A DNA stretch of 63,558 nt, filler included, from Reticulomyxa filosa (taxonomy: Eukaryota > Protista > Foraminifera): assembly GCA_000512085.1 (NCBI GenBank). It is 13 parts of 13 records of this genome, joined end to end, with 100 filler letters (N's around TTAATTAATTAA, not from the genome) between each part and the next. Parts side by side here need not be neighbours in the genome. Positions count along the whole stretch, not along the records: positions 33,462 to 34,461 come from ASPP01043874.1; 12 more parts are not named here. One strand, given 5' to 3'. The position numbers were made by a program, and so were the translations under genes. Of the stretch, positions 32,589 to 34,561 are shown in pieces. The first letter of the stretch is position 1; the number at the start of each line of letters is the position of its first letter. The notes beneath the pieces were generated by a model. That model did not search any database. It was given only the letters and a program-made list of their open reading frames with translations, and was not told the origin of the DNA.

Positions 32589-33462
32589 TTGTTGTACTCA
32601 TTATGATCAAGATTTTTTCTGCGCTTTCACCGTGAAGGGCCAGACAACAATGTAACAATACAAGCGCAATCTATGTCCTGTGTCTTTTTGTAGTTAATTC
32701 GTTAATTTTTTAAAAAAAAGTGCAAACTAGAATTTAAAAAATTAAGACAAACAATTTTTTATTTGTATCTATCTTCACACGAGAGATATTTGAAGAAAGT
32801 TTCTTGAAAGAAGCGTTGGTTCTTGACAAAAGACAGAAAAACGGAATAGAGATAATACCGTCCGAGGGGGAGTAATGTGTCTCGAAAATTTTTTTTTAAA
32901 AAAAAACATGACCAACAATCTTGAGCTTTCAGATTCATCTCCAAGTGAAGAAGAGGTGGGGTGGAACCTGACGATATAACAACAGTTTTCTGCTTAATAT
33001 AACTTGTCTTCGTCATATCACCAAAAAAAAACGCTCAAACTTGCAATTGAATCATGACAATAAACGATCTAAAAAAAACCTTTGTCTCACACTGCTTTCG
33101 AATAGGATTCATTGCCGTCAGTGCCCGAAACCACACCACAAGCAACAAAAGATGCGCAGTTTGTTGTAGCACCACAACTCACAATTCCATTCTCGGCTCC
33201 AATATTCTCTCCTTTGCCATCACCAGGATACGAGAAAGTTAAATCAGATCTGAAGAGAACAAAAAGTTATTTCGGAGTAAAAATGTGACAAAACTCAAAG
33301 GGGACAACAATCAAACAAATGATAATAATAAATAATGATGACAATGATGTAAAGTACATAANNNNNNNNNNNNNNNNNNNNNNNNNNNNNNNNNNNNNNN
33401 NNNNNTTAATTAATTAANNNNNNNNNNNNNNNNNNNNNNNNNNNNNNNNNNNNNNNNNNNNC

Positions 33463-33675
33463 GATCGCTGCCGGGACCTGGTTTCGGCCCTGTCGCGCGG
33501 CAGCCTCGTCGACGCGGTCTACTATCCCAACGCCTATCACAGCTTCGACTCGAAGGTCGCCGACCGCACCGTGCCCGGCGCAGCGGGCAAGCAGCACCAT
33601 CTCGCCTACGACACCGTCGCCGCTCCCGACGGCGAGGCGCGGACGAAGGCATTCTTCGCGAAGTACTTGCGGTAG
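33463..33675 (+). CDS. Dienelactone hydrolase-family protein, C-terminal fragment (bacterial)
   Basis: Reads DRCRDLVSALSRGSLVDAVYYPNAYHSFDSKVADRTVPGAAGKQHHLAYDTVAAPDGEARTKAFFAKYLR*. It has the YPNAYHSFD catalytic-His motif, the typical YD..AA..R..FF..L end and high-GC codon use. Not in the ORF track. Confidence 0.8.
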   Translation, partial: DRCRDLVSALSRGSLVDAVYYPNAYHSFDSKVADRTVPGAAGKQHHLAYDTVAAPDGEARTKAFFAKYLR

Positions 33676-33707
33676 CGCGCTGAATCTCCCCAGCAATAAC
33701 CTCATCC

Positions 33708-33730
33708 TTATATGAGCGCTGAACGGTCAA
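33708..33730 (-). promoter_or_regulatory. Outward-facing -35 hexamer (TTGACC) of an IS circle-junction promoter
   Basis: TTGACC at 33730-33725 is followed by exactly 17 nt (GTTCAGCGCTCATATAA) up to the inferred core. IS110/IS1111 elements are known to assemble a promoter across the circle junction. Confidence 0.6.
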
Positions 33731-33833
33731 GGGTCGGTTTGGATATTTTTGTCCCTCAATCATCGGGCCCTCTCGGGAATGGAAGCTTGAGAGTGCTGCG
33801 CGCGAGCGCGGCGCTGGAATGGGTCCGTGGAGA

Positions 33834-34062
33834 GGCGGCTTCGGCGCGTTGCGTTGGAACTCTGGGCGTCTGGCCAATGCACGTTGTGTCGACGGCATCA
33901 CCTTATATCCGGTCGGGCGTCGCTGCGCCCCGCACCCAAATCCCTCATGCACGGTCGAGGTCTTGCCCAGGAAACGATGAGACCCTTCTGAGACAGCGGT
34001 ACCGCATGGTCCATGGATGAGGACGGTCATCATCAGCTCCCTGCGCAACACACCGGGCCGCC
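33834..34062 (-). ncRNA. Candidate IS110/IS1111 bridge (seek) RNA
   Basis: A long basal helix (34035-34062 with 33834-33861) encloses two stem/internal-loop/hairpin arms. The loops contain 8-nt matches to the target flank (34015-34022) and to the IS end (33901-33908). Confidence 0.75.
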
Positions 34063-34067
34063 GCCGT

Positions 34068-34460
34068 TCAGCGGCCGGCCGGTGCGGCAGCTCGCAGCCT
34101 GGCGCCCTCGGGCACCAGGCCTTGGGTGAGGAAGCGCCACAGCGCCACCATCAGCTTGCGCGCCAGGGCGACGATGGCGATGCGTCTGACACGGCCTTTT
34201 TGATCGCCGACGCGGCTCGTGAACCACAGGCTCAAGGTGCTGGCGGGCTGGTAGCGCAGCCATAGCCAGGAAAGCTCGATGGCCAAGGTCCGGGCACGGG
34301 CGTTGCCGGCCTTGCTGATGCCCTGCTCGCGCGAACTCTGGCCGCTGTCGAACGGCGTCCCGGCCAGGCCAAAATAGCCTCCGACCTGGCGCCGGTTCTG
34401 GAAGTCGCGCCAGAATACCTCGTTGACCAGCGTCTCGCCGCCGACCGGCCCGACGCTCTT
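34068..34460 (-). CDS. IS110-family transposase/recombinase, C-terminal (Transposase_20) domain, 5' truncated
   Basis: KSVGPVGGETLVNEVFWRDFQNRRQVGGYFGLAGTPFDSGQSSREQGISKAGNARARTLAIELSWLWLRYQP..RRIAIVALARKLMVALWRFLTQGLVPEG. It carries the GL.P..SG (catalytic Ser), ISK.GN..R and A.ARKL motifs. Confidence 0.95.
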   Translation of the reverse strand, partial: KSVGPVGGETLVNEVFWRDFQNRRQVGGYFGLAGTPFDSGQSSREQGISKAGNARARTLAIELSWLWLRYQPASTLSLWFTSRVGDQKGRVRRIAIVALARKLMVALWRFLTQGLVPEGARLRAAAPAGR

Positions 34461-34561
34461 CNNNNNNNNNNNNNNNNNNNNNNNNNNNNNNNNNNNNNNN
34501 NNNNNTTAATTAATTAANNNNNNNNNNNNNNNNNNNNNNNNNNNNNNNNNNNNNNNNNNNN

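Follow-up and report, generated by a model that had tools for sequence, protein, structure and literature searches.

A predicted guide RNA in the right end of an IS1111-type element from an uncharacterised alphaproteobacterial clade

RNA-guided recombinases of the IS110/IS1111 type are under development as programmable tools for DNA insertion, excision and inversion. To our knowledge, characterised orthologues are few (IS621, ISCro4, ISEc11 and some others). Here we analyse the right end of an insertion sequence (IS) of this type, located at positions 33,462–34,461 (record ASPP01043874.1) of the window, a stretch of 63,558 nt joined from 13 records of the Reticulomyxa filosa assembly GCA_000512085.1. 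The class of guide RNAs to which the present one is compared was first described in 2024 (PMC11187229, PMC11208160). In IS1111 elements, the guide complementary to the top strand is located 5' of the guide for the bottom strand (PMC11187229), a multiloop donor site has been stated for many orthologues (Durrant et al., PMC11208160), and the ends carry subterminal inverted repeats of 7–17 bp (PMC11208160). In ISPpu9, the transposase gene is reported to be followed by a gene for a small RNA (PMC12288879).

The element in the window belongs to an uncharacterised alphaproteobacterial clade, and its right end very probably encodes a guide (seek/bridge) RNA that reads both the target and the element's own end. 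The element boundaries and the core could be fixed, the RNA structure is conserved among relatives, and three of its four guide strands co-vary with the DNA they match. A guide RNA of the IS110/IS1111 type downstream of the recombinase gene, with loops matching the flank and the IS end, had been proposed in a first-pass annotation of this sequence; a match of the recombinase to the NCBIfam model NF033542, the covariation of the structure, and the covariation of guides with DNA all speak for that proposal.

Boundaries, core and target site of the element

Scanning one genome per species with the 130-aa recombinase fragment of the window yielded 80 loci. Four of them (L001–L004) are copies in the chromosome of one Reyranella metagenome-assembled genome (MAG), and L005 is located in another MAG; the C-termini of their recombinases are 100% identical to the window fragment, and their element DNA is about 96–99% identical to that of the window. 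A full-length element could thereby be recovered: the full copies measure about 1.6 kb (1,600 bp), each encoding a recombinase of 390 aa. Together with the window, L001–L005 represent six independent insertions with the common right junction ...CATATA-AG-GATGAGGT. The copies agree with the window up to ...CATATAAGGATGAGGT; all six read ...CTCATATAAGGATGAGGT and diverge after it. On the left side, L001–L005 read ...(C)TCCTCAG ATTCTATGTGG..., preceded by differing versions of a long palindromic repeat that starts CCTCATCCTGAGGAG, so that CTCCTC-AG-ATTCTATG... is their common left junction. Empty sites, in which the two halves are joined by a single AG, were found in L002 (CTTCTCAGGATGAGGG) and in L005 (CTCCTCAGGATGAGGTGA). 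The target therefore is CTCCTC-AG-GATGAGGT, and occupied sites have the form CTCCTC-AG-ATTCTATG...CTCATATA-AG-GATGAGGT; the element runs from ATTCTATG to CTCATATA, and AG, present once in empty sites and at both junctions when the site is occupied, is the core. One and the same site was used in all six insertions. These near-identical copies and empty sites fix the boundary between element and flank at 33709|33708 and the core at 33708–33707. The core GG (33707–33706) assumed in the first-pass annotation has to be shifted by one base, GG being the G of the core plus the first base of the flank. The corresponding features of the window are as follows.

34071 to 34461, minus strand: the 3'-terminal 130 codons of a recombinase gene of the IS110 family, truncated at the edge of the piece; Pfam Transposase_20
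33709 to 33747, minus strand: IS right end with an imperfect subterminal inverted repeat; last IS base 33709, CCCTTGACC at 33733–33725
33707 to 33708, minus strand: core dinucleotide AG (CT on the plus strand), found at both junctions of full copies
33699 to 33706, minus strand: right target half GATGAGGT, outside the element, common to the window and L001–L005

The target of L001–L005 corresponds to the tip of a long palindrome of the repeated extragenic kind, CCTCATCCTGAGGAG ... GTCTCGAAGG ... CCTTCGAGAC ... CTCCTCAGGATGAGG, and the element is invariably inserted in the same arm of the palindrome, between CTCCTC-AG and GATGAGG; an unoccupied copy is present in L002. The palindrome was located at L001:3090–3152, at L002:7045 (plus strand) and on the minus strand of L005; the part of the target contained in the window is 33699–33708.

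The stop codon of the recombinase gene is located at 34070–34068 (minus strand), and its product matches Transposase_20 (PF02371) with an E-value of 8e-10. Both recombinase domains, PF01548 (DEDD_Tnp_IS110) and PF02371, are matched by the full-length copy L001, and the full-length copy scores 185 bits (cutoff, 140) against NF033542, "IS110 family RNA-guided transposase". A phmmer search of the PDB with the single protein gave no match; the transposases of ISCro4 (9t56, E 9e-11) and IS621 (8wt6, E 1e-9) were reached only with a profile of the clade. The IS110 family is characterised by a catalytic D-E-D-D tetrad and a conserved Ser-Gly in the C-terminal domain. Across 55 distinct recombinases of the clade, invariant residues include E80, D119, D122, S299 and G300. 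At the first position of the tetrad, all 55 appear to have a glutamate, residue 24 in the motif FELSK (protein encoded by L001:3221–4390); it aligns with the aspartate of the ISCro4 motif GIDVSK in a weak stretch of 2.5 bits only.

In organisation, the element has the short left end (69 nt to the start codon) and the long right end (about 360 nt from the stop codon) of the IS1111 group, with the predicted RNA downstream of the gene. Its two recombinase domains, site-specific insertion, tips free of terminal inverted repeats, and a short core instead of a target duplication agree with the IS110 family. The subterminal inverted repeats expected of IS1111 elements are also present: in local alignments of full copies, the left end and the reverse complement of the right end share 27–39 bp at roughly 75–80% identity, starting 2–5 nt inside each end and containing GGTCRAGAGG / CCTCTTGACC. 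This repeat scores about 2–7 standard deviations above shuffles in the window's clade and is weak or absent in the most distant relatives. The element may thus be called IS1111-type by organisation, which is less than proven membership of the IS1111 clade.

Between the basal helix of the RNA described below and the IS end, a stretch of about 135 nt (33709–33845) is poorly conserved except for the subterminal repeat (CCCTTGACC) and the last ~12 nt; its length varies widely among relatives, whose whole elements measure 1,488–1,806 bp. Beyond 33709 the sequence is unrelated flank. On the plus strand, a convergent gene ends within this flank; its 3' part (33463–33675) weakly matches Dienelactone hydrolase (PF01738, E 0.011), and its stop codon is 34 nt from the IS end.

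A conserved RNA structure after the recombinase gene

In about 60 relatives, the recombinase gene is followed by a predicted RNA of roughly 200–230 nt that is conserved among them. Its elements in the window are listed below; paired fractions refer to the alignment of the relatives.

33834 to 34062, minus strand: predicted seek/bridge RNA gene, as delimited by the outermost possible pairing; conserved core about 34056–33842
34025 to 34034, minus strand: target-binding arm 1, 5' strand of the lower stem, GAUGAUGACC; partner 33984–33976, 98–100% paired
33976 to 33984, minus strand: arm 1, lower stem, 3' strand GGUCUCAUC; 98–100% paired
33965 to 33969, minus strand: helix H3, 5' strand UGGGC; pairs with 33867–33863 and closes the donor-binding multiloop
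33863 to 33867, minus strand: helix H3, 3' strand GCCCA; 99% paired
33943 to 33960, minus strand: hairpin H5 (CCUC...GAGG); 94% paired, UA:28 versus GC:27 at one pair
33911 to 33936, minus strand: hairpin H6 (GGU.C.GGGCG...CGCCCG.ACC), between the donor strands; 94% paired, 8 of 9 pairs with double changes
33877 to 33898, minus strand: hairpin H7 (AUGCCGU...ACG.GCAU); 92% paired, 6 of 7 pairs with double changes

RNAalifold, applied to MAFFT alignments of 40 or 10 relatives, returned fragments only, because the helices are mis-registered in such alignments, as seen in column checks. A covariance model (R1) was therefore built from the sequence of the window and a hand-written structure for 34043–33853, using three near-identical sequences, and the relatives were aligned to it with Infernal. 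Every relative contains one full-length match to R1 on the sense strand directly after the stop codon (E 7e-61 to 5e-3). In the resulting alignment 93.7% of the cells are paired, as compared to 71% in shuffles and 31–51% when the partners are slid, and compensatory (double) changes occur at 41 of the 45 modelled pairs. One pair of the arm-1 stem, for example, reads UA in 30, CG in 17 and AU in 6 cases, and all five pairs of H3 show double changes (e.g., GGGC/GCCC, GGCUUCC/GGAAGCC and GAGCCC/GGGCUC). Independent minimum free energy (MFE) folds of distant members show the same architecture. The outermost helix, which is located outside R1, behaves likewise: duplexes of own flanks average −18.3 kcal/mol versus −12.7 kcal/mol for cross pairs, and none of 20,000 permutations reached the observed mean. 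G-U pairs are found on the recombinase-sense strand only. A search of the non-coding part against Rfam 15 gave matches at chance level (CRISPR-DR37 with 19 bits, snoRNAs), none of which came near a gathering score.

The MFE fold of the window sequence itself contains the basal helix (34056–34044 with 33853–33842, plus 34040–34035 with 33861–33856) and arm 1, with z = −2.3. Basal helix and arm-1 stem had been predicted before, and are now recovered by MFE folding and supported by covariation in the relatives; the same two lines of evidence favour the GGGCG/CGCCC hairpin and, with slightly trimmed limits (33969–33965/33867–33863), the stem originally drawn as 33965–33970/33862–33867. The middle stem of arm 2 (33947–33958/33889–33898) did not hold up. 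Its outer part is paired in 49% of cases, without excess over shuffles, and its inner GCAU/AUGC part, paired in 90%, is nearly invariant and uncompensated when changed. This stem was rejected in favour of the covarying hairpins H5 (33960–33943) and H7 (33898–33877), which flank the central hairpin 33936–33911, all three being closed by H3; the donor strands thus are located in the junctions of a multiloop. As no guide segment is paired in the conserved structure, the suspicion that the two 8-mers noted in the first-pass annotation might be buried in stable stems does not apply.

Some details of the fold are noted for completeness. An ACC/GGU hairpin around AUAUAA, which appears in some MFE folds, is invariant and shows no covariation in either direction, and AUAUAA would be looped out in it anyway; it was not retained. 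Within the modelled 34043–33853, the window differs from L001–L005 at 34039 and 33860 only. These positions are on opposite strands of the inner basal helix, and the two changes jointly shift its register (GGGAGCU/AGUUCC versus GGAAG/CUUCC) while pairing is kept. The loop of H5 contains a nearly invariant GUGCAUG and the 5' strand of H7 a nearly invariant (G)AUGC; the two could pair (33947–33951 with 33895–33898) in an alternative conformation, for or against which there is no covariation. In L051, two matches to the RNA model (L051:4416–4608 and L051:7018–7210) are found on a single contig, in the same orientation and separated by 2.6 kb, which points to two neighbouring copies of a related element.

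Guide strands and the DNA they match

Four unpaired strands were assigned as guides or candidate guides.

34015 to 34022, minus strand: right-target guide CCUCAUCC, 5' strand of the arm-1 internal loop; complementary to the core G plus right flank, GGATGAGG, 33707–33700
33988 to 33992, minus strand: left-target guide CUCAG, 3' strand of the arm-1 loop; identical to three left-flank bases plus the core AG
33901 to 33908, minus strand: left-donor guide AUAUAAG, extended by a G; same sequence as 33713–33706 (five terminal IS bases, core AG, first flank base)
33937 to 33942, minus strand: junction strand GAUUUG, candidate right-donor guide by symmetry; strand 5' of the central hairpin

Two of these matches had been noticed as 8-mers in the first-pass annotation, and both are correct: CCTCATCC at 34022–34015 (minus strand) is the reverse complement of GGATGAGG at 33707–33700, ATATAAGG occurs at 33908–33901 and again at 33713–33706, and within the 229-nt region neither has a second occurrence. 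When this region was shuffled 200,000 times by mononucleotides, P was 0.0034 and 0.0010 for the individual 8-mers and about 5e-6 for both, values which ignore the freedom in choosing the junction; this point is moot because of the comparative data. Plain alignment of the non-coding regions of relatives with 57–75% protein identity already shows loop and right flank changing together.

Window: loop CCUCAUCC, right flank GGATGAGG
L012: loop UGUCAUCC, right flank GGATGACA
L006: loop GUCGUCC, right flank GGACGAC
L019: loop CUCACCC, right flank GGGTGAG

Further cases of such co-change are L042 and L068, and pairs of guide and flank in relatives include GCUGAACC with GGTTCAGC, CCCAGCCC with GGGCTGGG, AUGGGCAC with GTGCCCAT, ACCCUACCC with GGGTAGGGT, and AUAAUGUCC with GGACATTAT. 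More than 25 specificities are represented among the loci. In each of them, the 5' strand of arm 1 is complementary to the core G plus 5–8 bases of the right flank, and the 3' strand ends with AG and repeats 2–5 bases of the left flank (CUCAG, CACAG, UCGUAG, GGGAGAG, GGUAGAG, AAUAG, AUAAAG or CCCAAG, for example). Over 23 distinct specificities, the right guide matches its own flank in runs of 6.9 nt on average, as compared to 3.2 nt for cross combinations; over 27 distinct left guides the corresponding values are 5.3 and 2.6 nt. In either case, 0 of 20,000 permutations reached the observed value. The left-target guide CUCAG had been overlooked before. The five near-identical copies read ...CCTCAG|ATTC at their left flank, and as CUCAG has the same sequence as this flank, its pairing partner would be the bottom strand; U33993 can add a G-U pair. 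Unpaired strands which are complementary to both strands of the target, overlap at the insertion point and change with the target are what is expected of a seek or bridge RNA. Both the covariance model from the 3' non-coding regions of homologues and the covariation of guide and target, suggested earlier as checks, thus gave supportive results (R1 and the permutations, respectively).

The left-donor guide tracks the right end of the element in the same manner, AUGUAAG occurring with ATGTAAG, AUAUGAG with ATATGAG, AUACAAG with ATACAAG, AUACGAG with ATACGAG, AUGUGAG with ATGTGAG, and AUAGAAG with ATAGAAG. Its eighth base, G33901, equals the first base of the right flank and covaries with it (mostly G/G, and T/T in three lineages); in L068 a U is found opposite a C of the flank, which still allows a wobble with the bottom strand. 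A33987, which follows CUCAG, is invariant and identical to base 1 of the IS left end. In both 3' strands, the match to the integrated junction therefore extends one base past the core. These one-base positions resemble the handshake guides of IS621 (PMC13626964), a suggestive likeness, as most such positions hardly vary.

On the other strand of the donor site, GAUUU could pair with AGATT of the top strand, i.e., the core plus bases 1–3 of the IS left end, using G-U/G-T wobbles. The base opposite position 3 of the left end is G where that position is C in 17 of 18 relatives, and mostly A where it is T. From symmetry and the tracking of this one position, GAUUUG is probably the right-donor guide; the assignment goes no further than probable because the match is short and the ends are conserved. 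A longer candidate, GGGAUUU with AGATTCT, was discarded, since its 5' part belongs to H5 and covaries with H5 and not with the left end.

Proposed mechanism, alternative readings and known systems

By homology with the characterised systems, the long non-coding right end would be transcribed in the sense of the recombinase gene to give an RNA of 200–230 nt, with a long basal helix and two DNA-reading sites, which would be processed and bound by the recombinase. At the first site, composed of stem, internal loop and stem, the 5' strand CCUCAUCC would pair with the top strand (core G and right target half), and the 3' strand (U)CUCAG with the bottom strand of the left target half and the core. 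Together, these strands would read about 13 bp, YCTC-AG-GATGAGG, which in L001–L005 is the tip of the repeated extragenic palindrome. At the second site, the multiloop around the central hairpin, the 3' strand AUAUAAG would bind the IS right end and the core on the bottom strand, while the short 5' strand GAUU(U) may pair with the core and the beginning of the IS left end; the RNA would in this way read the junction of the excised circle. Strand exchange by the recombinase would presumably take place at the AG core, the chemistry being that shown for IS621 and ISEc11-type elements.

In metatranscriptome assemblies from several studies, short contigs from three runs match the non-coding region at 33897–34055 (X15, identical to the window), 33936–34210 (X17) and 33786–33999 (X20), together spanning 33786–34210; two further contigs are located inside the recombinase gene, and none on the flank. 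The X15 contig, of 159 nt, is wholly inside the RNA, beginning with the basal helix and ending shortly after the AUAUAAGG strand, an extent close to the size of a "long seekRNA", contig ends not being RNA ends.

Several points have to be weighed against a guide RNA of the IS1111 type. The recombinases of the clade comprise 385–390 aa and so fall outside the 330–350 aa given for IS1111 transposases (PMC11187229), and they are only 23–28% identical to named enterobacterial IS110-family elements. The alignment from which the pair counts derive was fitted to the model's own structure. The right-donor guide measures only 3–5 nt, requires wobble pairs and is mostly invariant. The window contains no left end; its own left flank is outside the piece, and the left-flank data come from L001–L005. 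The metatranscriptome contigs lend weak support to expression of the RNA, as they come without strand, ends or level and may reflect DNA carry-over. Scanning of the piece for sigma-70-like promoters found none; the RNA may hence arise by processing of the recombinase transcript.

The match between loop and flank could have arisen at the DNA level, if GGATGAGG were inside the element, the true end were further out, and its complement were an arm of a terminal inverted repeat or a DNA site of a protein. The window and L001–L005 all share GGATGAGGT after ATATAA, which alone could mean that the element extends there, and IS1111-type elements do carry subterminal inverted repeats. However, uninterrupted CTYCTCAGGATGAGG sites exist without the element, in contradiction to this explanation, the remaining half of the palindrome is present in the left flank, and in relatives the sequence after AG is wholly different, with the loop sequence changing along. 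The helices moreover tolerate G-U pairs, which would be mismatches on the DNA or on the other strand. We consider an end further out hardly credible. It is also very unlikely that the structure is merely an element in the 3' untranslated region of the recombinase mRNA, acting in stability, termination or translational control and matching flank and end incidentally. Its start a few bases after the stop codon, with no separate promoter found, and its long closed stem, typical of stabilising 3' structures, would suit such a role, but incidental matches cannot explain the covariation of three loop strands with flanks and ends over more than 25 specificities, and it is the loop positions that vary, on a scaffold conserved elsewhere. 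The RNA may still have a regulatory role in addition to guiding.

An explanation closer to the proposed one, which we regard as unlikely, is that the RNA guides the choice of target only ("seekRNA" in the narrow sense), whereas the protein reads the donor ends via the subterminal repeats and the AUAUAAG match is a by-product of shared ancestry. The left-end guide is indeed very short and covaries weakly, the inverted repeat at both ends could be read by a protein, and an 82-nt RNA with the target matches was sufficient for movement of ISEc11 in the seekRNA study (PMC11187229). Against this, four positions of the AUAUAAG strand vary in step with the right end in independent lineages, and in every member it is unpaired beside a covarying hairpin, mirroring the geometry of the target site. 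An RNA that reads target and donor end hence remains the preferred interpretation. Whether the mostly alphaproteobacterial clade is a separate lineage of RNA-guided recombinases rather than a plain relative of IS1111 is a different matter; we put this forward tentatively, at somewhat below an even chance. The traits in question are a length of about 390 aa, the invariant glutamate, the long basal helix, the multiloop donor strands and the single-base handshake-like positions; in such a lineage, the left donor end may be read mainly by the protein via the subterminal repeat. If this were true, the more than 25 natural re-targetings on one scaffold would amount to a ready-made map of programmable RNA positions.

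The RNA class, its 3' location in IS1111 elements and the multiloop donor site have already been published (PMC11187229, PMC11208160); the present RNA therefore is an uncharacterised new member and not a new kind, and the understanding of the mechanism is unchanged. The main value of the finding is that the clade presents a conserved scaffold with many natural specificities, a naturally re-targeted series from which guide positions can therefore be read directly at the sequence level. Apart from the core, the guides comprise about 7 nt on the right, 3–5 nt on the left and 5 nt for the donor. For annotation, the analysis explains why the elements are found at a single position in a repeated palindrome, settles where the element ends and what its core is, and provides a covariance model that detects the RNA in distant relatives.

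Among the described systems, the seekRNAs of IS1111-type elements (ISEc11, ISKpn4, ISPa11 and ISPst6; Siddiquee et al. 2024, PMC11187229) share with the present element the location of the RNA downstream of the gene of a DEDD-type recombinase, two short overlapping target matches with the same order of top- and bottom-strand guides, natural redirection by guides swapped on a conserved scaffold, insertion into repeated palindromes, and subterminal inverted repeats at the ends. Unlike these, the present element, known from its sequence alone, has a recombinase of 385–390 aa, a long two-segment basal helix and a clear added match to the donor end. Insertion at one position of a repeated extragenic palindrome (REP) is also described for IS110-family elements of the ISPpu9/ISPpu10 type (PMC12288879; Tobes and Pareja 2006); their host group and target sequence differ.

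With the bridge RNAs of IS621 and ISCro4 (Durrant et al. 2024, PMC11208160; Hiraizumi et al. 2024, PMC11208158; PMC13626964), the RNA shares target and donor sites, with one strand each for left and right (the right-donor strand being a probable one here), and a 2-nt core, and the recombinases have a homologous C-terminal domain. As in IS621, the core reads CT on the other strand. The core-adjacent positions of both 3' strands match the integrated junctions, which resembles the handshake guides of IS621, with one base here instead of two. In contrast to IS621 and ISCro4, in which the RNA is encoded in the left end before the gene, it is located here in the right end after the gene, top- and bottom-strand guides follow each other in the opposite order, a multiloop takes the place of the internal loop as donor site, and the catalytic tetrad appears to begin with a glutamate.

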